Shown in pieces: positions 2,918-42,589 of a stretch of DNA of 64,000 bases. The position numbers and the translations under genes were made by a program. Numbering within the stretch: position 1 is the first letter of the stretch; every line of letters starts with the position of its first letter. Origin of the DNA: Heteronotia binoei (Eukaryota); NCBI RefSeq assembly GCF_032191835.1, contig NC_083240.1:24800001-24864000 (forward strand), given 5' to 3'. Under the pieces are notes generated by a model that saw only the letters and a program-made list of their open reading frames with translations, was not told the DNA's origin and ran no database searches.

Positions 2918-3040
2918 ATGGCCGTCTCCAGTAGCCGGAGCCTTCCTGAAGTGCAACGCCGCGTTTCCGCGGTCCATCACAGCACCGACCCGGAGGAGCA
3001 ACTGCGCTTCTACGACACTTGGGCCCCGGAGTACGAGCAG
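2918..3040 (+). CDS. METTL27: METTL27 (WBSCR27) SAM-dependent methyltransferase, coding exon 1 of 5; CDS join 2918-3040, 8167-8295, 10026-10161, 10282-10374, 13466-13695
   Basis: MAVSSSRSLPEVQRRVSAVHHSTDPEEQLRFYDTWAPEYEQ resembles the human N-terminus (SLPEVRARV...FYDRWAPDYDQ); 123 nt, phase 0, donor CAG|GTGCTT. Confidence 0.92.
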
Positions 3041-3240
3041 GTGCTTCCTCCCACCCCCGCTTTGCGGGCCTGATGATCACGTGTGCTCCGGAAGCGGTAT
3101 CTAAAGAGCATGTGCAGAGAGCATTCCCTCCGCGCGTTGCTGGCTTTTTTTTTTTTTTTTTGCAAAGCTTTGGCAAATTCGTGGAGGGGAGGTCTTATTA
3201 TTGTTATTGCTCGCATCAGCCAAGTGGAGCTTCTTTGTTC

Positions 3241-3386
3241 AAAGACAGCTGCAATGAGAGCCCTCTCAGCCCCACCCACCACACAGGGTGTCTGTTGTGG
3301 GGGGAGAAGATGTAGGAGATTGTAAGCCGCTCTGAGTCTCCGATTTAGAAAGAAGGGGGGGATATAAATCTACAGTCTTCTTCTTC
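3241..3386 (+). mobile_element. Squam3-like tRNA-derived SINE, 5'-truncated
   Basis: Matches the 3' half of the SINE repeated across the window (ctctcagccccaccc...gggtgtctgttgtgggg...tataaatct...cttctt). Confidence 0.75.
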
Positions 3387-3684
3387 AATGCCGGCGTGTG
3401 TGTGTGTGCAATTATGCAGCCAGAGGAGCAGCCATCATCTTCATATCATACCCTGCTCTGGAGCGTTCCAGTGGCTGGCCAGTACTGGAAATAGGGGAGG
3501 GTTGCTGCCTCAGGTGGCTCCCCGTAGCTACCAGGGGGCCTTTGGGGACACAGCCCCCTGACTTCTGGAAGAGGCCCCCTGACTCTGGGGCCCCAACAAG
3601 CCCCTGGGGCCTCTGCCAGGGCTCCAGGACAGTGGAGAGGCCGCTTCTAGGGCGGGGGGCATAGGCAGTCCCAGCTTCCAGCCT

Positions 3685-4312
3685 CAGTTAAAGGACCCGT
3701 CGATCAGCTGAGCCGTGGGCCCTTTAACTGGTGGGGGGGCGGGGGGCTGCTTCTGCTGCAGGCCCACCTGTTGTTTTACTGGTGGGGAAGAGAGCGTGGC
3801 GGTGAGCTCGCCACAGCCCTCCGTTCCCTGCCACTAAAACAGTGCATGGGCTGGCAGCAGTCACGGCAAGCGGGGGGAGGAGGGGCGGTGAGCGGGGGAG
3901 CACCGCAGTGGCGGGCGAGCAGAGCGCAGTGGCAGGGGGTGGCGAATGGAGTGCAGCAGCAGCGAGTGGGGGCAAGCAGAGTGCGGCAGCTGGAAGACGC
4001 TGGGGTCGCCTGCCTAGGGCCTATTCACCCTAGAGCTGCTCCTAGCAGCAGAAGCAGCCCGCAGCCCCCCCCCCCCACTACTTAAAGGGCCTGTAGACCA
4101 GCTGTTTCGCAGGCCCTTAACTTGCATGGGAGCCTGCTGCTGCTGCTGGCTCACGTTATTTTACTGGTGGGGAAGAGAGGCTGATGGGGAGCTCACCGTA
4201 GCCCTCCATTCCCTGCCACTAAAACAGCGCATGGGGCAGCAGCAGAAGCAGTCCCCAGCCTCCGCACAAGTTAAAGGGCCCATTTAACAGCTGATCCACT
4301 GGCCCTTTAACT
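3685..4312. repeat. GC-rich modular repeat: three CAGCTG-centred hairpins and two 77-bp direct repeats
   Basis: Inverted arms at 3685-3730, 4082-4120 and 4269-4312; direct repeats at 3774-3850 and 4159-4235. Confidence 0.75.
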
Positions 4313-4807
4313 CGCCCAGGGGCTGGGGGCTGCTTCTGCCCCCAGCCCAGAAGCAAGTTGTTTGGTGGGGGGAGGGGAGGGTGGTGGCAAGAGAGAGAGG
4401 CAGGCAGGGAGGGAGCCACTAGAGGGAAGGTCGTTTGGGGCACTGGGCAAGGCTTCAGTGCCCCCCCCAATGTAAATGCCCCCCTCCTGACCTTCCAAAT
4501 TCTGGTTACGGCCCTGCCTGGAGACCTCATGGAATGGCAGCAGATTTCCAGGTGGCAGAAATCAATTCCCCTGGAGGAAGGGGCCGGTTGGGAGAGGGGA
4601 CCTTCAGGCATTTAACAGCACTGAGTTCCAACTCCCCTCTCAGGCTCCACCTCCAAAACTTCAGGGATTTCCTGACCCAGAGTTGGCAACTATAAGGGAG
4701 TTGATCTGATCCAGGCAATGCTTCTGCTCGTGCAGTGAGCTTTCCCTTAATCACTGGGAAAGTGCAGCCCACAGATCTATCAGAGTTGTGAGATTATAGG
4801 GAAGGCC

Positions 4808-5319
4808 CAAGGATGTCAAACTCATTTATTATGAGGGCCAGATCAGACATAAATGACACCTTTTGGGCTGGGCCATGTGCGTACCTATTTAAGATTAGAT
4901 AGCAGCAATATAAACTTTATAAAGGACACAAACACAATTAAATATTTTTTAACTTAAAACATGCTTAAAACATTAGCACTCATTGGTCTTAAAGATGCTT
5001 TCTTTGTATTTCTCCCATGGGATCCAAGAACTGGGCAAATGAAGCTCTGGCTCTTTCCTTCCTTCCCCAGGGGACAAGGATGGGGAGGAGCCTCAACCAA
5101 AAGAAGGAAGAGAGGCTTGGCTCCGTAGCTCTGCTGTGTGATTGAGAGAGCCTGGCAAAGCAAGCTCTGCCTCCCCCTCCCCCCTCCTCTGTAGCTCTTG
5201 TGCAACTGAGCAAGTCTGGCAAAACAAACTGATGGAGAAGGAAGCAGATGACAGCCAGTTGCTCAGAGGCCTGATAGGATCCCTCTGGAGGCCCCTGGGC
5301 TGTATGTTTTACACCCATG
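4808..5319 (+). mobile_element. ~500-bp non-autonomous hAT-like element
   Basis: Degenerate TIRs (caaggatgtcaaac / gttttacacccatg); a homologous copy lies at ~62081-62555. Confidence 0.7.
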
Positions 5320-6396
5320 CCTTACCTGATCAAGGAGATGACTTCCAAGAAGAAGAGGGGATTGGATTTATATCCTCCCCTTAACTCAGGGTCTCAGAGC
5401 AGGTTATGATCTCCTTCCCTTCCTCTCCCTACAGTCAATAAGAATGGGAAAGTGTGTGTGGAGAAACACCATTTCAGGCCTGTGCTTGTCTGGGAGTTGG
5501 CTAGAGGAGTCTACAAAACTCTAGGCAAGGCTTTGGCCTACCTAGTCTATTCTTCCTTCCTCCTGCCCTCCTCTCTGGAAGCAGCACTTCTGAGGAGGCC
5601 TCCTAGAGAGACAGGAAGTCTTTCAGGCTGGTCTCCCAGAAGGCTGCAGGAGGGAAAACCAGTTCCTGGGCGGGAACTGGGGTTTATATTATAGATTTTG
5701 GAAGGGAAAAGTAGTTTGCTTTGAGTCTTGGAGACTGGTGAGTTAGTTCTGGATGGTATGGTCAGGGCCAATTGTATAATAGGGAAAGAAGGAGCGTTTT
5801 TCCCTCGTTTGATTTAGTTCTTCTGTTCACAATTTTATAATGCTTGTATATAGTTATAAATTTTAAATAAATATTTTGTCTGTTTAAAAAGGTAGTCCCT
5901 ATGTACCACATAGTTTCCCCAACCGCCTTAGACCACGCTACTGAAAGAGGGGAGTCCAGGGAAGGGGGAAGGCATACAGTTGGTAAGGTACCAATCCTCC
6001 AGGGGTCTCCCAAAGAAGGGCTATGGTCTCTGTGTTAACCAGGTACTGAGTTGGCAGAGGACCTTGAGGCCACAGAACTGGCAAGGGGGATTGGGAGTCC
6101 TGTTCCTCTCAGTCAGGAACCCCTAAATTGAACAGGTGGTGGCAGTGTGCCCTAGTGGTGGGAAGATTAGCTCTCTTCAGGAATTGGAACTCAAAAGGGA
6201 GTTGATGGGACCCGGTCTGAAGGCAGAATTGGGCCGGTTCTGTCACAGTGTGTATTACCAATTGAGAAAAAAAGTTAAAAGTCCTCACCACTGAAAGCAC
6301 AAGAGAAGAGAAAAACTTTGTCTGACTTCTGAATGGGTAACCAAGATGGCTGCAGGCACACATAAAGGGAGGTAGTTCCTTAACCTCAGTGCCCAC

Positions 6397-6590
6397 CAGT
6401 GTTCCCTCTAAGCTGAGTTAGTGTGAGCTAGCTCACAGAGTTTTAGCCTCCAGCTCACACATTTTTGTCTTAGCTCAGAAAGGATGATCCCAGAGCACAA
6501 TAATTTATGCAGTAGCTCACAACTTTAATGCCAGTAGATCACAAAGAAGAATTTTTGCTCACAAGCCTCTGCAGCTTAGAGGGAACATTG
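6397..6590 (+). mobile_element. hAT-type MITE with perfect 8-bp TSD
   Basis: TIRs CAGTGTTCCCTCTAAGCTG / CAGCTTAGAGGGAACATTG; TSD GTGCCCAC at 6389-6396 and 6591-6598. Confidence 0.88.
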
Positions 6591-7010
6591 GTGCCCACAA
6601 AGAAAAGGCCCTGTTTCTGGTAGCAACCTGCCTCACCTCCAAAGTGAGGGCACACAAAGACAGGCCTTCTTGTTAGATTTCTGGCAGGCAGGGCCAGTTT
6701 ATAGAGGAAAAGGCAGTTCTGTAGATGCTCACACCTCTTAGGATAACAGCAACACTTTGAATTAATTGAGCCCTGATATGAACTGGGAGGCAGCGGCAGT
6801 CATTAATCCTGCCTCAGCCATGGCAGTTAGCCCTCGTTCACCATCTGTCTGCTGCATTTTCACCTCTCAAAGTTTCCAAGTGCTTTCCAAAGGTCGCCCT
6901 GCATACCAGCACAGTTCTCGTGCCTCAATGTTACCAGAACGTGGGTGACAGTAACGGCCTTGCAGAAATAAATGGGCTTGTTTTGCCAGGCTTTCGAGAG
7001 AAGACGACGG

Positions 7011-7275
7011 GGCGATTTCCCACACAGCTTACCAAGGAGTGAAGTCCCTCCTCACCGCGCAGCATCTGTTTGGATTTCCCACCAACTGCTCCGCGGATTC
7101 AGGAAGTGCCGGACCTTTTGCGTCTCAAATGGAAATCGCTAAAACCCTAGTTTACGTTAGCGACGCAAAAGGTCCAGCACTTCCTGAATCCGCGGAGCAG
7201 TTGGTGGGAAATCCGAGCAGACGCTGCGCGGTGAGGAGGGACTTCGCTCCTTGGTAAGCTGTGTGGGAAATCGCC
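7011..7275. mobile_element. Foldback MITE, PIF/Harbinger-like
   Basis: ~115-bp inverted arms with 5 mismatches; flanking 3-mers CGG and CAG, compatible with a CWG-type TSD. Confidence 0.7.
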
Positions 7276-7335
7276 CAGGGACTTCTTATGTCAGAGGAAA
7301 GCTTTAAACCTGGCCAAGTGGATGGCTGCATACAG

Positions 7336-7608
7336 GAAGAAGAAGATATTGGATTTATATCCTGCCCTCCACTCCGAAGAGTCTCAGAGCGGCTCACAAT
7401 CTCCTTTGCCTTCTTCCCCCACAACAGACACCCTGTGATGTAGGTGGGGCTGGAGAGGGCTCTCACAGCAGCTTTCAAGGACAACCTCTGCCAGAGCTAT
7501 GGCTGACCCAAGGCCATGCTAGCAGGTGCAAGTGGAGGAGTGGGGAATCAAACCCGGTTCTCCCAGATAAGAGTCTGCACACTTAACCACTACACCAAAC
7601 TGGCTCTC
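7336..7608 (-). mobile_element. Squam3-like SINE, full length
   Basis: Reverse complement starts GAGAGCCAGTTTGGTGTAGTGGTTAAG (tRNA-like A box) with a B-box-like GGTTTGATTCCC and ends in (CTT)n. Confidence 0.85.
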
Positions 7609-8166
7609 CAGGGTTCCACCTCCCCTCCGCACCCCCGCCCCGAGCTTTCAGATCTTGTACATGCGTCAGCAATACTGGCTCCAAGAACACCCCCAGCTGC
7701 CGAGCTGCCCTTTCAGGGGTGTACAGCGGCCTCCATCACTGATTGGACAGATCGTGCTTCCATGGTTTGATAAGCCTCCATTCTGGCTGATGTCCATCCT
7801 TTGAATCCTTATCTCCCATTTTGCCCCACGCTGGCAGCTGCTGGGCTTCCCCTTCTTGGATCCGTGTTGTTTTGAGCGCTGGGGGGGCTGCTACTGTGTC
7901 TTGGTCTTAGCCAAGACTCAACCCTGACATGTTTCCTGATCTCGGACTCTGCCCTGGAACTTACAGAAGATAAAGAACACAGAGTGCTCCTGTTGAAGGC
8001 AAAGGGCACGTCCCCACGTAGCTAATCCTTTATTGGTTGCCTTGAGCTGAATCTCAGTCTGCTATCAAGATTTATGTATACAGTATCATAGTTTTGGGTT
8101 TTGTTAAAAAAAAAACCATGCTTGTGAATTCAGTTCAAATAATTGCCTGATGCTTTTCTCCTGTAG

Positions 8167-8295
8167 GATGTGACTGTATTGTGCTACCAAGCCCCCCAGT
8201 TGGCTGCTTCCTGCCTGGCCTCGGTGTTCCAGGAATCCATTGCAGATGTGCTGGTGCTGGATGTGGCTTGTGGCACAGGGCTTGTGGCCCAGGAG
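8167..8295 (+). CDS. METTL27: METTL27 coding exon 2
   Basis: Acceptor ctgtag|; DVTVLCYQAPQLAASCLASVFQESIADVLVLDVACGTGLVAQE contains SAM motif I (VLDVACGTG); donor GAG|GTAATG; 129 nt. Confidence 0.95.
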
Positions 8296-8427
8296 GTAAT
8301 GGGGCTCCCCAATCTCATCTGGCCTTGCATCTGAGTCTGGGCTACTGGGAGATTTACCAGGTGCCCGCTAACGGTGGCCTAACTCCTGGTCATTGCAGCT
8401 GATGCCCTCTGACAACAGTGCCTCCAC

Positions 8428-8730
8428 CAGGGGTGGCCAAACCGTGTCTCGGGAACCACATGTGGCTCTTTCACACATATTGTGTGGCTCTCAAAACCCC
8501 CACCACCCCACTGGCCAGCTTGGAGAAGGTGCTTGTCTCTTTAAATCACTTCGCCAAGCTAAGCCAGGTGGCAGCTTGAAAAAGGCATTTAAAATTAAAG
8601 ATGCTTTCTTTCCACCTCTACCTCCCCTCATTTTCCTCCCTTCCTCCAACATCTGACATGTCTTGCGGCTCTCAAACATCTGATGTTTATTCTTCGCAAC
8701 TCTTACGTTAAGTAAGTTTGGCCACCCCTG
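8428..8730 (+). mobile_element. hAT-Charlie-like MITE
   Basis: TIRs CAGGGGTGGCCAAAC / GTTTGGCCACCCCTG; degenerate 8-bp TSD gcctccac/gcctgtac. Confidence 0.85.
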
Positions 8731-9787
8731 GCCTGTACTGTTACATCACTATTCCTGGCTGCATCGAATTTTTCTGACCAAGTGAGAAAGGTACACAATT
8801 GAACCATTCCTATAGGAAAGTGTACCTGGCCATGGCAGCAAACTATCAAGAATGAGGCCTCTGATTAATATAATATCCTTGCCTTTGGTCACAGACAATA
8901 AATGGTTTACAAATTTCATGTTGGACAATTTATAAGAAACGAATGTTGCATTGTAATGTCAGGAGCTATTCTGTAATATCATTTGTTTGATCACTGAGAA
9001 AGGCCAAAGAGCTGAAATGCATGTGGTCAGTTTTGATAATGGTCAGTTTTGGTTCTTAATTGAGGCTATTACCAGGGCCAATATCTATTTTTAATCTACT
9101 TGGTAATAAATACATGTCTGTTTTTGATAATCCGCCAAATTTGATGTTTTTTAATTTAACTAACAGAATGACTGGACCTGTCCATTCAGATCTTCTTAAC
9201 CTTTAGGTTCTTAAAACAGTGCCTGTAGACCAGTAGCAGCCCCAAGCTACAAACCAAAGACCAAAGCACCATCCACATAATACCTTTGATTAAAACAAAC
9301 CCAATGACACGTCGTAGGGCGTAAGCTTTCAAAGTTCCCCAGACTTTTCCGCAGACCATAAAATGTAAAGCATATTCACAACATACAGATGTAAAGATCT
9401 GCTCCCGCAGGCACGTGGGGGAAATTGTGGCAAGCCACCAAGATTAAGCATTGAGGTGTTATAAACCAGGGGCTATAAAAACAAGAGGCAATAAAGCAAT
9501 ACAACTTGATAGCAACAATTGCCCTCAAAGTTTCTTTTGGGTGATAAAAGAGGGGAAAGACTAATTTCTTTGGGGACGGAAAGCCACAGTTGAATCAGTG
9601 AACAGCTGCTGGTGCTATACAGAATTTAGAAGTGTCAGTGGCTTTGTTGCAACCATCTTTGGGGATCCCTCCCCCACCCACCAGTCACACCAGTCTGTTT
9701 GGCATAGCCCTCCTCCCAACTCCTGGGTATCTAGAATGCCCCCTCCAAAGCATGATGGTTGGTGTGTCCCAGGGGTGGAATTCTAAC

Positions 9788-9925
9788 GAACTCCTTTGCA
9801 TGTTAGGCCACACCTGCCCGATGTAGCCAAAGCTCCAAGAACTTATAAAAAAGAGCCTTGTAAGCTCTTGGAGGATTGGCTACATCAGGAGGTGTGGCCT
9901 AATATGCAAAGGAGCTCCTGCTGGA
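9788..9925. mobile_element. Palindromic hAT-like MITE core
   Basis: gaactcctttgcatgttaggccacac...gtgtggcctaatatgcaaaggagctcc inverted arms; same family as 45211 and 56629. Confidence 0.8.
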
Positions 9926-10025
9926 ATGCGACCCTTGGTGTGTCCAAATGTGTCCCACTGAATTGGCAGCCAGCAAGAGGGTACAGTTCTAGGCCAGGAT
10001 CACGTGACTCACGCTATGTTCTAAG

Positions 10026-10161
10026 CTGCAGGCAAAGGGTTTCCGCCGTTTCCACGGCCTGGATGGAAGCCAGGGGATGTTGGAGCATGCACGCCGGAAG
10101 GGGCTGTACCAGGAGCTGAAGCAGTGTATGCTGGGCCAGGAAGCCTTGCCTGCATCCTCAG
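10026..10161 (+). CDS. METTL27: METTL27 coding exon 3
   Basis: Acceptor ttctaag|; LQAKGFRRFHGLDGSQGMLEHARRKGLYQELKQCMLGQEALPASS; donor G|GTAACA; 136 nt, phase 1. Confidence 0.93.
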
Positions 10162-10281
10162 GTAACAGCCAGGAATGAGGGAGAGGCTGGGATGAGCAGT
10201 AAGCTGCTCAGGTTGTTGGTTCCTGTTGCTCTCTCCCCGCTTCCTCTCCCTCACAGCTGAACATCACTCCTTCCATCCCAG

Positions 10282-10374
10282 GTGTCTACGATGCCGTTCT
10301 TATTGTGGGGGCTCTCAGTGAAGGGCAGGTGCCCATCAGCGTCATCCCAGAAGTGCTTCGTGTCACCAAACCAG
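10282..10374 (+). CDS. METTL27: METTL27 coding exon 4
   Basis: Acceptor ccatcccag|; (G)VYDAVLIVGALSEGQVPISVIPEVLRVTKP; donor CCAG|GTAGGG; 93 nt. Confidence 0.95.
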
Positions 10375-10425
10375 GTAGGGCCTTTGGCAAGATGAGCTCG
10401 ATTGCTGGGAGGACGGATTCAGCGG

Positions 10426-10619
10426 CAGTGCTCCCTCTAAGCAGTTGAGTCTTGTGAGCAAAAATTCTACTTTGTGAGCCGCTGGCATTCAAGTTGTGAG
10501 CTACTGTATAAATTAGTTTGCTCTGGGGCCATTTTTCCTGAGCTAAGACAGATATGTGTGAGCCAGAGGCTAAAAAGCTGTGAGCTAGCTCACACTAACT
10601 CAGCTTTGAGGGAACACTG
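10426..10619 (-). mobile_element. hAT MITE, same family as 6397-6590
   Basis: TIRs cagtgctccctctaagc / gctttgagggaacactg; 6/8 TSD ttcagcgg/ttcatcag. Confidence 0.8.
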
Positions 10620-11298
10620 TTCATCAGAACACTTGGCAGAACTTGGGTGGCCCAAATACTATCCATCCCAATACGGAACCCTCAAGAGTGGCCCGCAGTA
10701 GAAAGATTCAGTCAAGTCGTGAGCGGCCAGGCCTGTAGATTGCCTCTGACTACAAAAGCTCCATTGTCGACTGGTTGAAGATGGTTTGTCTCCAGCAGCT
10801 GGTGATCTGAGGTAGACTGCCACTGACCCCAGAGGCTTCATTCCAGGCTGGTTGGAACTGGCACGCTCTCTCCTGTAGCTCTTGGAAGGGTAACATTCCT
10901 CTGTCCCATACTCTGAAGACTCTGTGCTCCTGAAATACAGAAAGCGAAGCAGGGAGCAATTCTTCTTTCCTGCCTTCCTGTTTCTCTCACCTGTTGGGTC
11001 CAGGGCCAGCTTAACAAATAGGTACCGACCTATGGGCCCCTACACCTTTAGGGACCCTGGGCGGGTTTGCCTCTCTCTGCCTCTCCCCTGCAGCTTTGTC
11101 AAAGGGGCTTTTGAGAAGGTGCCTGCAGGAGATATTAGGAGATAATTTGCGGTGTGGGGGGGGGGTGCGATTTCAACTGCCTAAGGGCCTCCACAGGGTT
11201 TAAACTGGCACGTCGGGTCACAGTCCTTAATTAGAGCTGCTTTGCAGGACAGTTTGCAGTGGGAAGCTGGCTGGCAGTTTTGGAGTTTGTTCCTTTGA

Positions 11299-11601
11299 CC
11301 ATGGGTGGCCAAACTGTGGCTCTTTCACACATAGCTCTCAAAGCCCCCCATCACCCCATCAACCAGTTTGGAGAAGGCATTTGTCTCTTTAAGTCACTTC
11401 TCCAAGCCAAGCAAGCCAGCGGCTTGGAGAATATATTTAATGTTAAAGTTGCTTTCTTTCTACCTCTCCTCCCCATCTGTTTGCCTTCCAACCCTCCCTC
11501 CCTCCTTCCTTCTCTCAAATATCTGATGTTCATGCCTCGCAGCTGTCAAACATCTGATTTTATTCTGTGTGGCTCTTCCATTAAGCAAGTTTGGCCACCC
11601 C
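11299..11601 (+). mobile_element. hAT-Charlie-like MITE, same family as 8428-8730
   Basis: catgggtggccaaactgtggctc...aagcaagtttggccacccct. Confidence 0.8.
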
Positions 11602-12215
11602 TTCCTTTGATTGTGTTTCCAGGTTTGCTACAAGCGACAAGGAAACTCAGTCACTAAGATCTTTGTTCCGTGCAGCAGAACAGAGCAGGGCTTGGTTTCC
11701 ATTGTCTTCTGTTGCTGTGGCTTGAAGGTGCATCCAGTTGAATGGCTGATTTTGTAGACCTTCGCTGGGGCTGTCAATCCCCTGAAATGAGCTGTGGAAA
11801 GAAAGAACTGTGCACCAGGGTTGACAGCCTACCTCAGAGGGTCCGTCCCAGCAACTGAAAGCAATAAGTGTCTGTAACCCTGATTCAAGGCCTAAGAAAA
11901 CCTGCTGAATGTATTAATAGCTCCCAGTTCCACAGGCTTTTCTTAATTTAATCTTATGTAGTATTTTAAACCAGATGCTGGACAACCCTTATTTCTGACC
12001 GCTTCTTGTAGCTCAACAGCAGCTGCAGAAGACACCCAGGTTTGGATCTAGGATTTATTCTTTTTCCTGGCCTTCTGTAGTCTCTGAGGGAAATATTCGT
12101 GTTTCGCTCAGCGGGGTGTAGGACAGCTCCAAGGATCAGGAAAACATCCCAGATGCTGCAGTTGATGGGCTCTTTTTGGTCTGCTGCAGCAAGTTAATTT
12201 GGGATTTGGTGTCTG

Positions 12216-12234
12216 TGGTCACTAGATGGTGCCA
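12216..12234 (+). promoter_or_regulatory. Candidate CTCF site (forward orientation)
   Basis: TGGTCACTAGATGGTGCCA versus the consensus TGGCCACYAGRKGGCRSTA. Confidence 0.5.
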
Positions 12235-13158
12235 CTGCCCTGAGAGGCTTTTCTAAGCAGGCGGTTGGCTGGGAGGTGGGGAAGGTGGAGTTTGGCACCA
12301 GGTTGTTTGGATAAGCTTTCTTGGTCTTCCCTGCTGCCTAGCTCTGTCCAGAGGGCCTTCTAGGCCTTGATCCCTTGTCGTGGTAGAATCTCGCTCCTGC
12401 AGGGGAAACACAGAAGGATGAGGGAGTCTCTGCTTCCAGTTCACAGAAAAAGGACGAGGCTGGAATGGATTAGCGGGTGGTGTGCCGAGGTGATGGTTTG
12501 GGTTAGGCCAGGGGGCCCCTGACTTTTTTTGAGCCTATGGGCAGCTTTGGAATTCTGACATGGCCTTGTGGGCGCAGCCACAGATTGGCTGCCACAAAAT
12601 GGCTGTCGTAGGAAGTGGAGCCAGCAACAAAATGGCTGCCACAGCTTATCTTCAGTCACACCAGCGAAGATCCTCGTGCTGTGGCAGCAACCTTTAAAAA
12701 GTTTGCACAGTTCTCTGATGGTCATTCCAAAGCCTTGCTGGGCAGACGCCTCACCTGACTCCACCCACTTCCTAAAACCACTTGGCGATTGCCAGAAAAG
12801 GCGTTTTCAGGCACCACCTAACCCACAGGCACTGCGTTGGGACCCCTGAAGGAATAAATGTGGTTATTCAGAATTCTTTCCTGGATCTGCCCCACAGTTC
12901 TTGGATAATGAGCAACTGGTTTGGCCTGCAGAGGCAAAGCACACCCCACAAGAGACCAGCTGGCTTTCAGCCCTATTTCTCCCCAGCTCTTTTCCTCCTT
13001 GAAAGCGAGAGAAGGGATAGCACAGATATGCTTCCAGGTCACCTCCATCTCCCTTGTTCTGTCTCCATGAGTGAAGAAATGCCTCAGAAGGACATTGAAA
13101 GGAAAGGCCAAGAGGAGAAGCAGAGAGATGCACAGTCCGGTTTTTATTGCTGCTCTCC

Positions 13159-13308
13159 CAAGGCTGGCCCTGCCACTAGGCGAGCTAGGCAATTGCCTAG
13201 GGCACTGGCCTTCAGGGGCACCAAACTGGGTACTCCCCATGTGACTCAGTGTGGCGGGGGCAGAAGTGAGCCTTGCCTAGGGTGCCAGACAGTCTAGGGC
13301 CAGCCCTG
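13159..13308 (+). mobile_element. 150-bp hAT MITE with perfect TSD
   Basis: TIRs caaggctggccct / agggccagccctg; TSD TGCTCTCC at 13151-13158 and 13309-13316. Confidence 0.85.
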
Positions 13309-13465
13309 TGCTCTCCTTCTGCGCTCAAGAAACAAGGAAATGATGAGTTTAGTAGGACAAAGGGCCAGATTCAGCTCCAGGGCTTATCTTGCCCACTCCT
13401 CCCCCCCTGCCAACTGCATTCCTGTCTGTGCGGGTGTGATGTTTGATCAGCTCTTCACCAAACAG

Positions 13466-13695
13466 GGGGCTTTCTGTGCCTGACCACACGGGACAACCAG
13501 AGCAACCTGCGTTACAAAAGCCAGATGCAGCAGCTGCTGGATGACCTGGAACAGCGAGGATTGTGGGAAAAGGTCAAGGTGCAAGAAGTCGAACAGTGGG
13601 AGAGGGCAACATCACAACAGGAAGCCAAGGGGGGCTCAGACTACATTTCTGGGGTGATTTACCTGTACCGGAAGACTTCAAGGATCAGCTGTTGA
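13466..13695 (+). CDS. METTL27: METTL27 coding exon 5 (terminal)
   Basis: Acceptor aaacag|; GGFLCLTTRDNQSNLRYK...SDYISGVIYLYRKTSRISC* with TGA at 13693-13695. Exons sum to 711 nt = 236 aa plus stop. Confidence 0.93.
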
Positions 13696-17171: not shown

Positions 17172-17275
17172 AGTGACAGAAAAAAGTTAGAGTCCAGTTG
17201 CACTTTTAGGATCAACAAAGTTTTATTCAAGGTATAAGCTTTCATGTGTATATACACTCCTTCAGCTACAAACAC
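17172..17275 (-). mobile_element. Probable Penelope-like element terminal remnant
   Basis: Reverse complement reads gaaagcttataccttgaataaaactttgttgatcctaaaagtgcaactggactc, a motif I associate with reptile Penelope ends. Assignment from memory only. Confidence 0.4.
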
Positions 17276-17785
17276 AGAAAGTGTGAGCCAGGAAGGGCCT
17301 TTGAATCGCACTGCTCTATATAACCCAGTTGGATTTTTATGGTGCATTCCAGTTCTAGGATTCTGCTGCATAAAATTGTTATAAAATATATTTTGCTGTC
17401 GTTTAGCTTGGACAGGGGGAGGAGATGGGGAGTTAACCCCCCTCACCCTCCCAAAAAAAACCCCCTTACTGCAACACTAGAAATGGCCCTGGACATTTGC
17501 CCCCAAAGTCTTCCTGTGTGAGATCTAAGGGGTCCTCCTCTTCACCAGGATGTGATGCCCAGATTGCTTTTTCTGACAGCTGGCTCTTTAAAGGAAATCC
17601 TCAGCTAGTAGCAGGACGGTAGCCAGGATTTCTCATTTTGTGGGGCACATATGTTTTCTTGTGGGGCACCCATTATGGCTAGCTGAGGGGAGTGAAACTG
17701 ACTGAAAGCAGCAGGGCAGTTTTCTTTCCTTCCCCAGCTTCCCAGCTGCTTGGGGGGGTGGGCTGGGGAAGGAAAGCTTTAAAAA

Positions 17786-20091: not shown

Positions 20092-20739
20092 CTACACGTA
20101 GTCTTTCCGGGCATAGCTCCCCGGGTTGGAGTGTTTTGCCGCACAATATCTCACCGGGTGGGGCTTCTTGGCCTTGTTCTGAGGGAAAAGGCAGCAGAGG
20201 GTGGACCCCCCGAACACCAAGAGGGCACTGGCCGCCCAGCCCACATACAGTGCGACGCCCAGCTCTCGCTTCAGGGCTTCAGGCACCAGCGGGTTGTAGA
20301 AGTTGCTGATGATGGAGTTGGCTGACCAAGACACGGGAACCAGAAGAGCCAGCCCCGCCAGGATGAAGACCGTGCCAGCCACCGCCGAGACTCTGGCCTT
20401 GGCGCTTCTCTCCTCCACGCAGCGGGTGCACTCGGCACCAACGATGGCGATGAGGAGGGCCAGGAAGGCCATGGCAATGGAGACCACCACAAGGGCACGG
20501 GCGGCCTGCAGGTCTGACGGGAGGTCCAGCAAGGAGTCGTAGATCTTGCACTGCATCTGGCCGGTGCTCTCGTAGACGCAGTTCATCCACAGGCCTTCCC
20601 AGAAGACTTGAGCCACGATGATGTTGGAGCCGATGAAGGCCGTTATCTTCCACATGGGCAGGGCACAAGCTAAGATGGCCCCCAAGCAGCCCAAGACCGA
20701 CAGGGCCAGCCCCAGCAGCTGCAAGGCCAGGACCGCCAT
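20092..20739 (-). CDS. Classic claudin, CLDN3/4-like paralogue, 215 aa; orthology unresolved
   Basis: Intact ORF; signature W-EGLW-C-C (FWEGLWMNC...QCK); four hydrophobic segments; juxtamembrane cysteines; ECL2 [11 protein letters not shown]; PDZ-binding C-terminus KDYV. Confidence 0.95.
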
Positions 20740-20741
20740 GC

Positions 20742-20780
20742 CTGGAAAAGAGCACAGGGGTTGGTGAGGAGGAACAGATA
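20742..20780 (-). other. Splice acceptor 2 nt upstream of the claudin ATG (5' UTR intron)
   Basis: Minus strand reads tatctgttcctcctcaccaacccctgtgctcttttccag|gcATG; AG at 20743-20742. Confidence 0.7.
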
Positions 20781-20884: not shown

Positions 20885-21153
20885 GGACCCAGTTTGGTGT
20901 AGTGGTCAAGTGCGTGGACTTGGGAGAACCGGGTTTGATTCCCCTCTCCTCCACATGCGCACCTGCTGATGTGACCTTGAGTCAGTCACAAGTTCTCTCA
21001 GGACTGTTCTCTCAAGAGCAGTTTCTGTCCTAGCTCTCTCAGCTCCACGTACTTCTCAGGGCATCTGTTGTGGGGAGGGGAAGGGAAAGAAGATTGTAAG
21101 CCGCTCTGAGACTCCGAGTGAAGGGTGGGGTATAAATCCAATCTCTTCTCTTT
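20885..21153 (+). mobile_element. Squam3-like SINE
   Basis: ccagtttggtgtagtggtcaag head; tataaatccaatctcttct tail. Confidence 0.8.
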
Positions 21154-21371
21154 TCTTCGCTTCACTTCTCTTCTCTTCATACCAATAAAGGCTGGCTCAC
21201 TGACTGACTGGCTGGCTGACAGACATTCTCCTCTTTTCCATTTTATCCTCATAACAACCTTGTGAGGTAGGTTAAGCAGTGACTGGCCCACAGATCACCC
21301 AGCAAGCTTCCACGGAGAGTGGGGAATTCAGACCTGGGTCTCTCAGATCCTGGTCCAACACTCTAACCACT

Positions 21372-23262: not shown

Positions 23263-23642
23263 ATCTCTGCCCAGTGAACAGTGTGCACAGGTTCTTGATT
23301 GACCAAACTCAGTATTGCCGCCTTGGGCTGGCAGTAACACTCTGGGGTCTCAGATATAGAAAGCTGTTACCCAACTCCTGCAGCCCTTGGGCTGTAGATG
23401 CCCAGAAGCAAATCTGTACCTGCCCACAAAGCCTCCTGTTCCTGGATTGTGCTTCTGTGGGGCCAGGGGCAGTCAGCACACACACACACACACATCAGTC
23501 CTGGTCTTTGACTCCCTGGTGTTTATTGTGGAGTCAATGACCTCACCACCACCACTGCATTCGGCATGCACCCGACTTGAGAAGGAGCCAGGCCTGTAGT
23601 TACAGTGGGGCCCCCATCCTCACCCAGAGCCAGTTTGGTGTT

Positions 23643-23925
23643 GAGAGCCGGTTTGGTATAGTGGTTAAGTGCATGGACTTTTATCTGGGAGAACCGGGTT
23701 TGATTCCCCACTCCTCCACTTGCAGCTGCTGGAATGGCCTTGGGTCAGCCATAGCTCTGGCAGAGGTTGTCCTTAAAAGGGCAGCTGCTGTAAGAGCTCT
23801 CTCAGCCCCACCCACCTCACAGGGTGTCTGTTGTGGGGGAAGAAGATAAAAGGAAATTGTGAGCCCCTCTGAGACTCTGATTCAAAGAGAAGGGCAGGGT
23901 ATAAATCTGCAATTCTTCTTCTTCC
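23643..23925 (+). mobile_element. Squam3-like SINE, full length
   Basis: gagagccggtttggtatagtggttaag...tataaatctgcaattcttcttctt. Confidence 0.85.
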
Positions 23926-24407
23926 TTGAAACCACCTGGCCCCATCACTGACAGCCCCTGCCTCTACTTTCTCGTGCTTGCCACCGCCACTTTCTTGGGT
24001 GGGCTGCTTTGGCCCCCAAGTCCAGTTCTTTGCCTAATGGGTGCCCTTTTCTGCTCCAGCCGGCGGGCAGCAGCGAGGGCCATGGAGGTGAGGGCTATGG
24101 AGGCCCGAGGTTGAATCCCTCGGCTTTCAAAGCATGGCAACAAATCCTGGAGCTGCTCTGGTCTGATGTAAAAGTGGGGGTCTTCTAGGAACTGATTTCA
24201 GTAGAACTGCTAGGGAGCAGCTGGGGAATCCTAGCCTCCCTGCCTGCCTGTCTTCCAATGCTGGCAGCCCGGCCCCCTGGCCCCTCTAAACAAAAAAATC
24301 CTGCCTTTGGTCCCACCAAATTTGAAATTCTGACTACAGCCCTGGAAGGAGCAAGAGATTGTTCTATATCTACAAGGACCCAAGTAGTTCCTTCCATCCC
24401 TCTGGGG

Positions 24408-27820: not shown

Positions 27821-28094
27821 AAGACTGCAGATTTATACCCTGCCCTTCTCCCTGAATCAGAGACTCAGAGCAGCTTACCATCTCCTATATCTTCTCTCCC
27901 CACAACAGACACCCTGTGAGGTGGGTGGGGCTGGAGAAGGCTCTCACAGCAGCTGCCCTTTCAAGGACAACCTCTGCCAGAGCTATGGCTGACCCAAGGC
28001 CATTCCAGCAGCTGCAAGTGGAGGAGTGGGGAATCAAACCCGGTTCTCCCAGATAAGAGTCCACACACTTAACCACTACACCAAACTGGCTCTC
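27821..28094 (-). mobile_element. Squam3-like SINE within the probable CLDN4 3' UTR
   Basis: Full-length reverse-complement copy ending aaccactacaccaaactggctctc. Confidence 0.85.
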
Positions 28095-28969
28095 TACACC
28101 AAACTTAGCTCATCCTGATTTGTATTCTGCTTCTGCTGGACAATTTACACTTGAGGAAGCCCATATGTAATCTGAAAGATTGCAAAGATGAGTCGGCCCA
28201 CCCAAAGAAAGGCTGCGGCTCTTGCCTCTCGCTGTTTCCGAAGGGACTCTCCCTTCTGAAGGCTCACGTGAGGTTTGCATTTCTCTGTGTTCAATTAAAT
28301 ACTTAACAAAACCTGCAAACAATGCGCGACCCCCTAGCCAGACCTCCCCACATGACCTGGAAAGTCCTTCATGGTCATCTGCCAGCAGCTTTTGACCCAG
28401 GGTCCAAGACACCAAGATCAGACCAATATTCTCACTTCTGTCTTCAAATTCTCAGTCCCCACTCCAAGCCACCCTGCTACCCCAGCGTGGCTTCAAGTTC
28501 TAGGCAACCAGAAATGGCCCTGGAAACTAAGACACACAAACCCCAAATTCTATGCTGTTGCTCTCCGTTCCATTCCGGTGGCGAGCCGATGCAAAGGCCA
28601 GGAGGAAAGCCCTTTCCTAGTCCACCTTTGCCAGGTGGAATCCATTGGATGATCTTGAAGATAAGCTGTTGCCCATCGTCCAAAGGAGATGCCTCACAAG
28701 CCGGTTCGCCACATGTTTCCAGTGGGTGAAAGCAAGGGCTGGCACCCCCGCTGACCAATCACATCCTCTCTTCGCTTGAGATGTTTCCTCCGAACACTGG
28801 AGAATGATGCCCACTATTAGAATCAGGACAAGCAGCCACAACATGAAGTTTTTAAATTACAGAAGGAGGGTTTGTCCAACAGAGAAAAAAATGCAGTCTT
28901 ACATCTCCCCCTTTGGTGTGGGGGAAGTCCCAGGCCAAAACCCCACACGGCAGGGAGACGGGCTGATTT

Positions 28970-29599
28970 TTAGACATAGTTGCTGGTCGGCATGGATCGG
29001 GCTGCCGTGTACTTTGCGGAATAGGGCTTCTCATTTTTCGGGGGGCAGTTGCAACACAGCAAGGACCCACCGAGGAGCAGCAGGCCAGAAGAGGCCCAGC
29101 CGATGTACAGGGAGGCGCCCAGTTCCCGCTTCTGGCTTTCAGTGACCAGAGGGTTGTAGAAGTCCCGGATGATGGTGTTGGCGGTCCAGCAGAGGGGGAT
29201 GAGGAGCATGATGCCGGACAAGATGAAAATGATGCCGGAGAAGATGACAACCCTGGCCTTGGTCGATTCGTCCTCCACGCAGTTGGTGCACTTCCCGCCA
29301 AGGATGGCGAAAAAGATGCCCACCACCGCCAGGACGATGGCGATGATCACCAGCGCCCGGGCAGCCTGCATGTCCTGAGCCAGGGCCAGCATGGACTCAT
29401 AGATCTTGCACTGCATCTGCCCGGTGCTTTGGACCACGCAGGTCATCCACAGGCCATCCCAGATGATCTGGGCCACCACGATGTTGTTGCCGATGAAAGC
29501 TGTCACGCGCCACATCGGCAGGCCGCAACAGAGGATGGTGCCCAGCCAGCCAATGACCGAGAAGGTGATGCCCAACACTTGAATCCCCATGGTAGCCAT
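28970..29599 (-). CDS. CLDN4: Claudin-4, single-exon CDS, 209 aa
   Basis: Same length as human CLDN4; C-terminus [28 protein letters not shown] matches CLDN4 (CCNCPPRTDKPYSAKYSAARS...SNYV); tail-to-tail with METTL27 as in mammals; Kozak GCACCATGG. Confidence 0.93.
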
Positions 29600-36455: not shown

Positions 36456-37213
36456 TGGTGCTTCTTTTCAGAGCCAGAGTGGGGCTAAAGGATACCTGCC
36501 ACACCCAGACCACTGATTTGTACCACCTAATAATTTGAAGGGCCATCCTAGATGGACAGAACTAAGTGTCTTAGATGGGTGTCATTTGAAGTAGGTATAG
36601 AGTTGCCAACACCAGCTTGGGAAATTCCTGGAGATTTGGAAGAGGAGCCTGAGAAGGGCAGACTTTAGAGAAGAGGGAGCTCAGCAAGTATGTGATGCCA
36701 TATAGTTTCCCCACTGAAGCTATAGTTTCCTGCAGGGAACTTTGCAGCTAATAGGACTGCAATGTATAAAATGGTTTTATAGACTTGCTTGGATAAATGA
36801 TTAGGGACCGGGGTCTGTACTGTTGCATGTAGATGAATGGAATAGAATCCTACTTCTGTCCCATTTAATGTGTCATGAGAATACTTATGTTCTGCTTCAG
36901 TTCTTTCTGGTGGTTCCAGACTTCTAAAATCCAAATGCATTGGTTATTAAATGTCCCATTTTGTTGACTGTACCGACTGCAACTTGAGTCCTTGTGAGAA
37001 TGGCTGACTATAAATAACACAAGCAAATAATCAATCAATCAAAGTCTGTAGACTGGAGATCTGCAGTAATTCCAGGAGAACTCCAGAATCCACCTGGAAA
37101 TTGGTAATCCATATCTTCAAAACATAATTTAAATGGAAGTGTGATGTAGTGGTTTGCATGTCTGGCTAGCATGTCAAATCCTCACTTTGCCACAGGCTAG
37201 GTAACTTTGGGTC

Positions 37214-37487
37214 AGAGTCAGTTTGGTGTAGTGGTTAAGAGCTGCAGACTCTAACCTGGAGAACTGGGTTTGATTCCCCACTCCTCTTTTACATGCAGCC
37301 AGCTGGGTGACCTTGGGTCAGCTGCAGTTCTCTCAGAGCTGTTCTCTCAAGAGCAGTTCTCGAAAGAGCTCTCTCAGCCCCACCTACTTTACAGGGTGTC
37401 TGCAGTGGGGAGAGGAAAGGAAGGAGGTTGTAAGTTGGTCTGAGACTCCAAGTGAAGGGCAGGGTATAAATCCAATCTCCTCCTCCT
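37214..37487 (+). mobile_element. Squam3-like SINE
   Basis: cagtttggtgtagtggttaagag head; gggtataaatcc tail. Confidence 0.8.
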
Positions 37488-38605
37488 CTCCCCCTTCTCT
37501 CTTTCCCTCAGCCTAACCTACCTCACAGGGGTGTTGTTGTGAGGATCAGCTGGAAGAGGGGAGAGCAATCTCAGAAGCTACTTTTGGTCCCCACGGGGCA
37601 GAAAAGCAAGGTATAAACACCGAAACAAATAAATCTGACTTTGCCAGCTCAGCACCTGTTCCACGCCCACTCTGATGGAATCATCTACTCTCCTGCTAGG
37701 ATCCTGTTTTCATATCCCTTCTGCATAGTAATGGAACACACCTCTGTCCTGGAATGTTGGGTGTTCTGCCCTCATTTGCTAATAACTTCCCACCCATTCT
37801 CCTTATGCACTTTGCGTGTGTGCGTGCGCACATACACATACACACTGCAACGTAATGAAAAGTTTCATCCCTCTTTCTCCAACTTCCAATGACCACTTCA
37901 GACCATCGAAGAAGGTGCAGGCAGCAGGCAGGAGCCTTCACATCATACCTGGCTCCAGGTCCAGGTAATCACCCCTCCTCCCCAAAAAACATTTGCATTG
38001 GATTTGAGTGTCATTTGATGGGTTGGGATCTTATTCCCCTGAACCTCACTGGCGGCCACTTTCCGCTGAGAAGCAGAATTTAAAAATACTGATTGTTATG
38101 CAGCTGCCGTGTCCATGTCAATGGACAAGGTAGGTGGGGAGGAAGAAAGCGCTCCTGTGAAATCCTGCTGAATTCAAGGCCTGGAATGAGAGACCACCAA
38201 GGAAGTCTACGTTTGCTGTGCAGACTGCAGAAGCAGGCAATGGCAAACCAATTCTGAACATCTTTTGCCTTGAAAACCGCACAGGGCTGCCATAAGTCGC
38301 CTGCGGCTTGATGGCAAAATAATAATAATAATAAAGTATCCAGCACTTGTCCAAGCACAGCCTAGTGGTTACAGTACCAAATTCCGCCCCCCCCCCCCCC
38401 CCCGCCTCAGCTGTGAAGCATCCTGGATGACTTTGGGCCTGTGATGATAAAATGGAAGACAGGAGAATAATGTCTGTCATCTCAAGGAAGGGTGAGATAA
38501 TAATGGAATAGAGAGAAAGTCACACATGTAACAGAATGAATGCCCTGGGAGTTTTCCTTCCATGGACATTGACAAGGAGAGAGCAGCGGGGACAGGCAAG
38601 AACGA

Positions 38606-39319: not shown

Positions 39320-39597
39320 GAAGAAGAAGAATTGCAGATTTATACCCCGCCTTTCTCCCTGAATCAGAGACTCAGAGCAGCTTACAATCTCCTATATCTT
39401 CTCCCCCCACAACAGACACCCTGTGAAGTGGGTGGGGCTGAGAGGGCTCTCACAGCAACTGCCCTTTCAAGGACAACCTCTGCAAGAGCTCTGGCTGACC
39501 CAAGGCCATTCCAGCAGGTGCAAGTGGAATGGGGAATCAAACCCGGTTCTCCCAGAAAAGAGTCCACACACTTAACCACTACACCAAACTGGCTCTC
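39320..39597 (-). mobile_element. Squam3-like SINE, full length
   Basis: Near-identical to the copy at 27821-28094. Confidence 0.85.
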
Positions 39598-40479
39598 AGT
39601 AGATAGAAGGCCCTGGAGATCTCCAGCTTTTACATCTGATCTCCAGCTGGCAATAGGGTTGTCAGTTCCAACTCAGGAAATATCTGGGGACTTTGGGGGT
39701 AGAGCTAGGAGCAAGGGTGTGACAAGCACAGCTGAACTCCAAAGGCCCTCACCCTTAGAGCCAGTTTGGTGTAGTGGTTAAGTGCGTGGACTGTTATCTG
39801 GGAGAACCAGGTTTGATTCCCCACTCCTCCACTTGCATTCTGATTAGGCATCACCTGAGAATATTGCTTGCAAAGCTTTAGATATGAGTTCTACAGCAGC
39901 TCAGGTTTAGGAACATTCTGCTTTTAATCCATCTGCGAAGTGCCGTGTATAAGGCCCGGGGGGAGGGTTAGAAGGGGTGGTGGTTTTTGTTTTAATTCTG
40001 CAAACGTTGCTGATGTCAAGATTCTGTATTAGATGAAGGTAAAGCAGTTTGTCTGACAGGTTGGGCCTCGTTAATTAAAAGGCAGCTGGTCTTACTTCCC
40101 AGTAAAATGGCTAATGGAAGTTCAGTGAAAGTGAAACTGTCCTAAAAGGGAGAGATCAAAGTGTGGAAAGGAAGACAAAAAGATGCCCATCTTGCCACAC
40201 CTAAGGAAGCTGACAGCACCAGGCCTAAGAATTATCAGCGAATCATCAGTCCATATAAAAACTATAACTTTAAACCTTGTTCATCACGTGTCACAGTGAA
40301 CACACACACAACCTGTATGCACATGTGTACATTTGCTTGTAAGAAAGAGCTAGCAGAAATTCACTTTACAAATGAAACCAAGGACCAGTACCTGGATAAA
40401 CAGAGGCTTTAAATCAGATGTTGAGTTGAGTTGTATATATGTTGAATGTAGCACTGAATATAGAGTTGAATATGCGTTG

Positions 40480-40890: not shown

Positions 40891-42589
40891 ATAGTTGAAC
40901 ATAACAAAAGAATTACTCAACTCGTGCTAAGATTATGGCAGTGTGTTCACTGTAACTTGTGAACGGGGCTGTATTTGTCCAACAAGACACTGGTTCCTGA
41001 TTCCCTGTGCCACTGTTCAGAGGAAAAGAATCCTCCTGGTCTTGGAGACCAGGTGACAGCAATGAGCCAATCCTGGTATACTACCTGCCCCAATGCTTCC
41101 AGATGTGTTGCTCTCCCTCTCTCAAAAATGGCCATCCAGCTTGTTGCTGAACAAAGACACCAATCTCCCAGGGGCAGTGGGCTGCTCTTGGACAACTACA
41201 AAGCACCTGCTTGGCGCTCCATCCCTTGATTAAACAGGTAAACAAAAGAAACCTGGAAGTACAGTGGTCACCACATACTGACCTGTGGGAAGGGACACCA
41301 ACCAGCAAGACAGGGGCCAGCAAGACCATCCTAGACATCCTTGGATGCCAGCCGGTTCCTGGGAGAATCCTAGCCCCCACCCTTCCCCGGGACCGAGATC
41401 CAAGGCGGAATCTGATCCTGGTGTCGCCAGCTTCCCTTCTTCACGGGCACAGAGCCCGAGGCGTGTCTGGGGGTGAACACGATTCAGAGAGCTGCAGCTG
41501 AGCCAGTGGTGGGTCTCTCTTCACCAGGGGTGTCTAATGCACAGATTTGGGGAGGAGGGTATGCCGTGAGGACAAATGAACAGAGGAGAGGTTCACTCAC
41601 CTGCTGAGATTTCTGCGGTTGCCAGAGAACAGGGGAGAGATCCCGGGCAGTGGGGAAGGGAGGGGGCCGCTGCCTTGGCTGCGAGGGTCCTTGGGAGCTG
41701 CAGGACAAGTTCCTCGAGAGGGTAGGCTGGCCCAGGCAGGTCGCCAGAGAAGGCGGGGAGCCATGGCAGAGAGCCACGAGGCTCAGGAGCAGGGTGGCAG
41801 GAGGGTGTGCGGTAGCGCGTGCCCAGACGGAGCGAATCTATGGGCCTTTGTCTCGGGAGACATGGCAATATCATACAAGGAGAACCTGCATAGTGTTGGA
41901 TGACCTCTCCTCCTCCTCTGTGTCCCTCCTTACCTATTCTGGGTTGCAGTTTGAGTGTGAGTGCAGGAATCCCTTTAATATCTGTTGCAAGGAACAGGGT
42001 GATTTTCTCTTGGACTGCTTCACAGCTAAGGCTTGCAAAGAGGCAAGCCACAGAGGAATCTGCGAGCACTGTAGGTGATTTGTAGGTGCATATTATGAGC
42101 CCTTTGGGAGAAAAGTAGGACATACGTAAATGAAATACAAATTTAGGAAACCAGCGCTTCCAACTATGGCCATCCCATTGTTTACATAGACATAGCGCAC
42201 AGAAACACACATTTAACAGGTGAATTCCCTCGATACTGGTCTAATGAGACCAGTAGCCCTATGAGAAGGCGCACCAACTCTGGCTTGGGAAACTCTTGGA
42301 GATTTGGGGGTGTGAGGGGCCTCAGTGGGGCATAATGCCCAAGAGTCCAGCCTCTGAAGGTGATATTTTTTTCTAGGGAAATTATCTTTGTAGTCTGGAT
42401 ATCAGTTTTTATTCTGGGAGATCTCCAGGGCTGACCTGGAGATTGGCAATCCTACTTATAAGGCAGCTGCAGATGGACAGTCTGCTCTGACTGGCAACAG
42501 CTTTGCAGGGTCTTGCAGAAAGGCTTTTTCTCGGCCTGCTCTTTCCAGCCTTTGTATGTGGAGATGCACATATTCAACCACTGCTCCGC

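Follow-up and report, generated by a model that had tools for sequence, protein, structure and literature searches.

A 64,000-nucleotide (nt) stretch of the gecko Heteronotia binoei genome (assembly GCF_032191835.1, contig NC_083240.1, positions 24,800,001 to 24,864,000 of the forward strand; hereafter the window, in which all coordinates are given) contains, besides CLDN3 and CLDN4, an additional claudin gene at 20092-20739 on the minus strand. This third claudin is very probably the gecko orthologue of claudin j (cldnj), a claudin of ray-finned fish. The best overall explanation of our data is that this orthologue works as a cation-favouring tight-junction component, the epithelium of the ear included, a reading to which we give a probability of about one half. 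The third claudin itself is not new, since gene predictions for it exist across hundreds of sauropsid genomes. The initial annotation of the window took it to be probably functionally uncharacterised, a view at odds with the published mutant phenotype of the fish orthologue.

Results

Orthology with claudin j

The third claudin reads CVYESTG...LLDLP in its first extracellular loop (ECL1), where the neighbouring CLDN4 reads CVVQSTG...MLALA. Its relatives were gathered by a protein search with a shortened query, since two-domain fish models of about 370 residues swamped the first search. Identity to the third claudin amounts to 92-95% in geckos (94-95% for the Gekko japonicus protein P0069), 75-84% in other squamates, turtles and the crocodile, 68-75% in birds and 69-72% in salamanders. 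Caecilians carry the protein as well, and a partial protein of the tuatara shows the same loop signature. Among the group members in the top protein-search matches there was no mammal and no frog. The signature was also spotted in a catfish model named 'claudin j', in its second half, and a search with that half led to the claudin j family of ray-finned fish, to which zebrafish claudin j (NP_571844.2) belongs. Sturgeon, paddlefish, bowfin and eel claudin j share the gecko version of the loop (CVYESTG...LLDL), and teleosts display CVYERTG or CVSEYTG together with LLDL. An EALKRE-type second extracellular loop (ECL2) and a C-terminal YV end are common to all the fish claudin j proteins compared.

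The two-domain fish models deserve a separate remark. Many of the fish models at NCBI have a length of about 345-377 residues and hold two claudin domains that derive from tandem claudin genes lying side by side (P0001-P0114). Read-through or merging probably explains these models, which outscore true orthologues in full-length protein searches.

Two maximum-likelihood trees place the third claudin with claudin j. In a careful analysis of 95 rows under LG+C20 (tree 1), 26 tetrapod and 19 fish cldnj rows fall on one side of a single branch (support 100/99). Tree 2 (88 rows) was built after removal of P0194 and of truncated fragments and addition of zebrafish cldnj and chicken proteins; it splits 27 tetrapod and 20 fish cldnj sequences, NP_571844.2 among them, from 41 other claudins (CLDN3/4/6/9 and other fish claudins) with a support of 100/91. 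Within this group, a tetrapod (98/91) and a fish (100/99) subclade mirror the species tree, with bichir, sturgeons, bowfin and eel preceding teleosts on one side, and amphibians preceding squamates, which stand beside turtles, crocodile and birds, on the other. CLDN4 (100/91), CLDN3 and CLDN6/9 (100/100) form separate clades, none of which includes the third claudin, and the CLDN6/9 clade comprises proteins from turtles, tuatara, caecilians and frogs. Tetrapod and fish members of the cldnj clade have in common a set of derived residues, namely QVFW, EALKRE and acidic residues at positions 57 and 72. The mosaic of CLDN3, CLDN6 and CLDN9 traits perceived by the initial annotation was thus not borne out, as trees and synteny (see below) designate a tetrapod orthologue of ray-finned-fish claudin j. 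The same evidence, with the E57/D72 pair of the fish clade and the zebrafish mutant phenotype, matches the case that the initial annotation had named as a refutation of its own proposal, that of a plain orthologue of an already characterised claudin bearing identical residues.

A special affinity of the clade for CLDN4, which appeared in tree 1, was gone in tree 2 after removal of the turtle model P0194 (Terrapene, UniProt A0A674IAP0). This model is a chimera that follows CLDN4 up to about residue 158 and continues with a C-terminus that belongs to the cldnj orthologue and is identical to P0123; it tied the clade to CLDN4 in tree 1 because it joined both.

The names given to these proteins are remarkably unstable. 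Tetrapod orthologues are found in databases as claudin-4-like, claudin-3-like, claudin-9-like or CLD4 protein; the name 'claudin-4-like', foreseen by the initial annotation, is the one carried by Gekko japonicus and by other databased orthologues. The chicken orthologue (XP_004946474/5, P0297) is named 'claudin-3' at NCBI, while XP_004946475 has been listed and aligned as chicken 'CLDN9' in a study in which the true chicken CLDN3 is NP_989533 (PMC7372130). Both the CLDN3 and the CLDN4 genes of chicken lie directly beside this orthologue (locus L004). In addition, zebrafish cldn-j has been equated with claudin-6 (PMC3875606).

Acidic residues of the first extracellular loop

Two substitutions distinguish ECL1 of the third claudin and its orthologues. 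The codons of Y56 (20574-20572) and E57 (20571-20569) are adjacent at 20569-20574 on the minus strand, and E57 falls at the pore-lining position in a gap-free alignment with claudin-4. D72 (20524-20526, minus strand) lies in the extracellular helix segment, where LLDL replaces LLAL. The basic residue K65 (20545-20547, minus strand) is kept as in CLDN4. The codon assignments of Y56, E57 and D72 agree with those of the initial annotation, and its count of two more acidic residues than CLDN4 is confirmed: ECL1 holds five acidic residues in the third claudin versus three in CLDN4, the basic ones numbering three in both, while K65 is retained.

We counted the residues at these positions in 237 members of the cldnj clade (161 tetrapod and 76 fish) and in 50 claudins of the CLDN3/4/6/9 type. 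Residue 57 is acidic in 229 of the 237 clade members (154/161 in tetrapods, 75/76 in fish) and residue 72 is an aspartate or a glutamate in 235 (159/161 and 76/76, respectively). On the paralogue side, V56, Q57 and A72 are present in 50/50 sequences, and an acidic residue at 57 or 72 in 0/50. K65 occurs without exception in the 237 clade members and the 50 paralogues, and it is also an invariant column of an alignment of 46 sequences. Since the acidic residues are fixed across the whole orthologue group, their presence in the gecko protein is not a matter of chance.

A few bird members of the clade depart from this pattern. P0161 (Mesembrinibis), P0190 (Todus) and three more display CVVQSTG in place of CVYESTG and keep QVFW and LLEL. 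These versions could result from gene conversion by the adjacent CLDN3 or CLDN4, or from chimeric assemblies.

Conservation of the locus and apparent loss in mammals

The gene order CLDN4-like, orthologue and convergent METTL27-like gene is common to the gecko window, Gekko japonicus, chicken and bowfin. In chicken, CLDN3 (-), CLDN4 (+), the orthologue (+) and a METTL27-like gene (-) all lie inside 13 kilobases (kb). The Gekko japonicus orthologue is followed by a convergent methyltransferase gene 7.7 kb downstream. In bowfin, one or more claudins and a cldnj-like gene precede convergent METTL27-like genes. The zebrafish locus has a CLDN4-like gene 8 kb upstream of cldnj and no METTL27 within 10 kb of it. 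In hyena, METTL27 comes 1.8 kb after CLDN4 and this interval contains no claudin-like sequence, an arrangement with which the human map of the cluster agrees (PMC2937028). The Xenopus tropicalis cldn4 locus showed no neighbour gene within 10 kb on either side. The synteny comparison proposed in the initial annotation thus reveals a gene shared by gecko, chicken and bowfin and absent at the syntenic spot in hyena.

The arrangement and the trees together indicate that the last ancestor shared by ray-finned fish and tetrapods already possessed cldnj as a single-copy gene, with a CLDN4-like gene and METTL27 as its neighbours. The gene persists in caecilians, salamanders and all sauropsids, and was apparently lost in mammals. 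The initial annotation had proposed a reptile paralogue lost in humans: a conserved paralogue missing in humans it is, but it is not specific to reptiles, as fish, salamanders, caecilians and birds possess it too.

The fish loci show two further particularities. Bowfin (L002 11475-12086) and zebrafish (L008 about 17196-17777) each have one more claudin just downstream of cldnj, which is very divergent (27-35% identity); the bowfin copy is devoid of the first ECL1 cysteine, and no counterpart was found in the gecko window. Bowfin also has two tandem METTL27-like genes (L002 13136-14397 and 14973-16269; L003 13403-16910) versus one in gecko and chicken.

Claudin hallmarks and selection

At the sequence level, no hallmark of strand-forming classic claudins is missing from the third claudin, which has four membrane helices, the W-GLW-C-C loop, the membrane-proximal cysteines and the YV end. 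It matches the Pfam family PMP22_Claudin (PF00822) at 1.2e-26, with a score of 94.1 bits where the cut-off is 26.7. Among solved structures, human claudin-4 (7KP4, 4.8e-82), with which residues 1-102 align without gaps, is the best match, followed by claudin-9 (6OV2, 2.9e-81). The claudin signature of ECL1 (W30...G49-L50-W51...C54...C64; 20548-20652, minus strand) and the terminal Y214-V215 (...KDYV; 20095-20100, minus strand) correspond to invariant columns of the 46-sequence alignment; the C-terminal YV of claudins is their PDZ-binding end. AlphaFold2, run with this 46-row alignment, predicts helices at residues 2-29, 75-107, 111-146 and 154-183, the membrane parts being modelled with good confidence.

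The ratio of non-synonymous to synonymous substitution rates (dN/dS) against Gekko japonicus is 0.135 at a dS of 0.19. This estimate, one of the checks put forward with the initial annotation, establishes that the third claudin is under purifying selection.

The residues NPLVP of ECL2 (149-153; 20281-20295, minus strand) correspond to the motif of claudin-3 type to which the C-terminal domain of Clostridium perfringens enterotoxin binds. When claudins are stripped with this domain in chick experiments, the third-claudin protein may be removed too.

Gene structure and window content

The open reading frame of the third claudin (20092-20739, minus strand) is unbroken and encodes 215 residues followed by a stop codon at 20094-20092; its assignment is supported by translation, Pfam and trees. 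A splice acceptor AG (20742-20743, minus strand) stands two bases before the ATG (TTTTCCAG followed by GC ATG), so that the coding exon starts at 20741. This AG is conserved in Gekko, in chicken and in two other squamate contigs. Among the Logan contigs of a squamate orthologue, L011 is unspliced, while L012 and L013 carry a different leader of 133 nt joined exactly at the AG that precedes the ATG. These spliced mRNA contigs come from two runs, and their comparison with L011 indicates that the orthologue is transcribed and spliced in another squamate. The leader of L012 (nt 1-121) aligns to 41740-41625 of the minus strand in the window (blastn, 47 nt at 85%, E 7.6e-10), which delineates a putative non-coding exon 1 at 41601-41740 (minus strand) followed by a consensus donor CAG/GTGAGT whose GT is at 41600-41599. 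The gene is therefore likely to be composed of this putative exon (about 41601-41740) and of the coding exon from 20741. With this structure, CLDN4 would sit inside the 20.9-kb first intron of the third claudin, or would share its leader. No polyadenylation signal was found within 790 nt after the stop codon.

CLDN4 itself (28970-29599, minus strand; 209 residues) is the upstream neighbour on the same strand as the third claudin and groups with tetrapod CLDN4 (100/91). CLDN3 (51832-52476, plus strand) is divergent from CLDN4 and groups with bird CLDN3; it encodes 214 residues from an internal ATG (MSMGLEIGG...) of an open reading frame at 51745-52476. On the other side, tblastn with exon peptides of chicken METTL27-like located a METTL27-like methyltransferase gene at about 2951-13674 of the plus strand, with exons at about 2951-3040, 8167-8304, 10017-10172, 10287-10382 and 13465-13674. 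These exons are collinear with an annotated Gekko japonicus methyltransferase gene that carries Methyltransf_11/25 domains, and about 6.4 kb separate the end of the last one from the stop codon of the third claudin. From their position, the third claudin lies between METTL27, which is convergent with it, and CLDN4, which shares its strand. Open reading frame, translation and METTL27 exons hence agree with the initial annotation on an intact claudin of 215 residues at this place, and the CLDN4 and CLDN3 genes of the window make it the third claudin of their cluster. No fourth claudin-like sequence was found in the 64 kb of the window. An interspersed repeat of about 280 base pairs, common to Gekko japonicus, occurs in at least 10 places of the window on both strands (e.g., 7334-7608, 20886-21158, 23640-23926, 27830-28097, 37208-37506, 39320-39598 and 59992-60266).

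Discussion

Position 57 is a glutamine in barrier claudins and in most of the family, and it faces the pore constriction in current models of the tight junction. The glutamate fixed at this very position is the strongest argument for predicting that the third claudin makes a cation-favouring junction. The equivalent residues are D55 in claudin-15 and D56 in claudin-10b, four of which form a selectivity cage named the 'tetra-aspartate cage' (PMC10149405). Moreover, a pore model of claudin-5 with the single change Q57D, in which K65 was retained, proved to be cation-attracting and anion-repelling in simulation (PMC10149405). In the mechanism that we propose, the third claudin would act in the tight junction by making the barrier lower for cations (Na+, K+ and possibly Ca2+), or by attracting them, in comparison with CLDN3 and CLDN4. 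By orthology with the zebrafish gene, its site of action would comprise at least the epithelium enclosing the inner-ear endolymph, where otoliths or otoconia grow; the calcium supply to fish endolymph is described as partly paracellular. Zebrafish cldnj mutants (Hardison 2005) suffer from small otoliths and from hearing and balance defects, as related in passages of PMC10746142, PMC7618414 and PMC8147561, and small otoliths upon cldnj loss are also described in PMC3875606. The otic epithelium of these mutants looks normal (PMC8147561), and this normal epithelium together with the small otoliths fits an ion-specific role in the epithelium that lines the endolymph. Taken separately, a cation-favouring pore remains a tentative prediction drawn from sequence, and an inner-ear role in reptiles, which is extended from fish by orthology, is a similarly cautious suggestion.

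Several observations weigh against a cation-favouring claudin j in the gecko. One is K65, the residue that makes claudin-4 disfavour cations, which is invariant in the clade and could pair with E57 and cancel its charge. Of two features of cation-channel claudins, an acidic residue at the pore-constriction position is provided by E57, but the lack of an opposing basic residue at 65 is contradicted by the invariant lysine. Given the presence of K65, it would be premature to class the third claudin among the channel claudins. Furthermore, the clade has a glutamate where claudin-15 and claudin-10b have an aspartate. The AlphaFold2 model has a mean predicted local distance difference test score of 66.8, which falls to about 41 over residues 30-72, and it was left out of any consideration of ECL1 geometry. 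Tissue data for any tetrapod cldnj orthologue were not found in the literature. As for orthology, both trees are without an outgroup, and a single clade presupposes a root placed somewhere within the remaining claudins; this assumption is supported by E57 and D72, which are derived with respect to the family-wide Q57 and A72.

The strongest competitor, which we see as a plausible though less probable account, keeps the orthology with cldnj and proposes a sealing claudin similar to CLDN4. In such a protein, E57 would be engaged in a salt bridge with K65 or in strand packing, D72 would tune the cis contacts of the extracellular helix, and the acidic residues would choose polymerisation partners rather than ions. 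The presence of K65 in 237/237 clade members and the near identity of the remaining ECL1 with that of the barrier claudins CLDN3/4/6/9 are in line with this view. So is a report, cited in a passage of PMC10149405, that Q57D in claudin-5 alters trans-interaction by weakening it, a result that also counts against a cation pore. The authors of one zebrafish study left undecided whether a barrier or a signalling defect causes the phenotype (PMC3875606). Against a sealing function, the one comparable case, the simulated claudin-5 Q57D with its K65, gave a pore that attracts cations (PMC10149405), and the normal otic epithelium of zebrafish mutants suits an ion-specific defect better than a leak (PMC8147561).

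Alternatives that dispute the identity of the gene or its activity are far less probable. Names such as claudin-9-like, claudin-3, claudin-4-like and claudin-6, the usage of PMC3875606 and PMC7372130, the EALKRE of ECL2 and the strong match to claudin-9 (6OV2) would all suit an orthologue of CLDN6 or CLDN9 in sauropsids, or a copy of CLDN4 or CLDN3 that arose recently in reptiles. This is very improbable in view of the separate CLDN6/9 (100/100), CLDN4 (100/91) and CLDN3 clades of tree 2, the affinity for CLDN4 in tree 1 being an artefact of the chimera P0194. Turtles, chicken and this gecko hold CLDN3 and CLDN4 in addition to the third claudin, and a recent duplication is contradicted by the presence of cldnj genes in bichir, sturgeon and bowfin. 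Mouse Cldn13, which resides in the same cluster near Wbscr27/Mettl27 (PMC2937028), might be a fast-evolving mammalian survivor of cldnj, and rat and mouse both carry an untranscribed 'Cldn4-like' sequence in the cluster (PMC2937028). Yet it is unlikely to be the same gene as the third claudin, since Cldn13 is found in mouse only, with a remnant in rat, is expressed in haematopoietic tissue and was concluded to arise from a murine-specific duplication (PMC2937028), while the 1.8-kb interval between CLDN4 and METTL27 of hyena harbours no claudin-like sequence. An unexpressed or decaying copy in this gecko would agree with the lack of a polyadenylation signal in the 790 nt after the stop, but it is hardly credible for an intact frame with a dN/dS of 0.135 against Gekko, all family-invariant residues, a conserved splice acceptor and an orthologue for which another squamate shows transcription and splicing. 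In their own right, the 'Cldn4-like' sequences that lie untranscribed near Wbscr27 in rodents (PMC2937028) constitute a lead for a mammalian remnant of cldnj.

More speculatively, the cldnj group may represent a natural 'Q57E' classic claudin, in which an ancient paracellular path for cations (perhaps Ca2+) would have been installed on an otherwise sealing scaffold of the CLDN3/4 type and would supply or condition the endolymph in which otoliths and otoconia of calcium carbonate form. In this scenario, which we regard as rather unlikely in its entirety, the path would have been kept by fish, salamanders, caecilians and sauropsids and lost by mammals; the squamate leader exon would lie beyond CLDN4, with CLDN4 in the first intron, and the two genes might be co-regulated.

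Whatever its function, the coexistence of an acidic residue 57 with a retained K65 offers a clean natural test of current pore models. The otolith link, combined with the apparent loss in mammals, gives a testable angle on the handling of endolymph cations in non-mammalian ears. Finally, one vertebrate orthologue group bears at least six names (claudin j, claudin-6, claudin-3, claudin-4-like, claudin-9-like and CLD4), and with names this unstable, chicken and reptile studies of expression or knock-down can confuse the third claudin with CLDN3, CLDN4 or CLDN9.

Comparison with known claudins

Among characterised systems, mouse Claudin-13 resembles the third claudin as an extra member of the CLDN3/CLDN4/METTL27 cluster that is missing in humans (PMC2937028). 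It is set apart, by description only, as murine-specific, haematopoietic and highly divergent (PMC2937028). Claudin-9 (6OV2; E 2.9e-81) and claudin-6 share the EALKRE of ECL2 and a VAQV-type start of ECL1, but have Q57 and A72 and belong to a distinct clade. With claudin-15 (4P79) and claudin-10b, the common feature is an acidic residue located three positions beyond the first cysteine of the loop; claudin-15 is otherwise distant (E 3e-31), and both proteins have an asparagine at the position of Q63 and an aspartate at the cage (PMC10149405), where the third claudin has Q63, K65 and a glutamate. Tetrapod claudin-4 (7KP4) and claudin-3 are much closer, as cluster neighbours with 55-60% identity, the same length, the same W-GLW-C-C spacing, K65 and D68, to which claudin-3 adds NPLVP in ECL2. 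Nevertheless, CLDN3 and CLDN4 are sealing, cation-disfavouring claudins of separate clades with V56, Q57 and A72, in contrast to Y56, E57 and D72 of the third claudin. The closest parallel is found in fish, where the bowfin cldnj orthologue shares the gene neighbourhood of the third claudin. Zebrafish claudin j (NP_571844.2), which is 56% identical to it, displays QVFWEGLW, an acidic residue 57, K65, D72, EALKRE and the YV end; its teleost loop (CVYERIG or CVSEYTG) differs from CVYESTG, which sturgeon, bowfin and eel share with the gecko, and its function in otolith formation, hearing and balance is shown by the zebrafish mutants.

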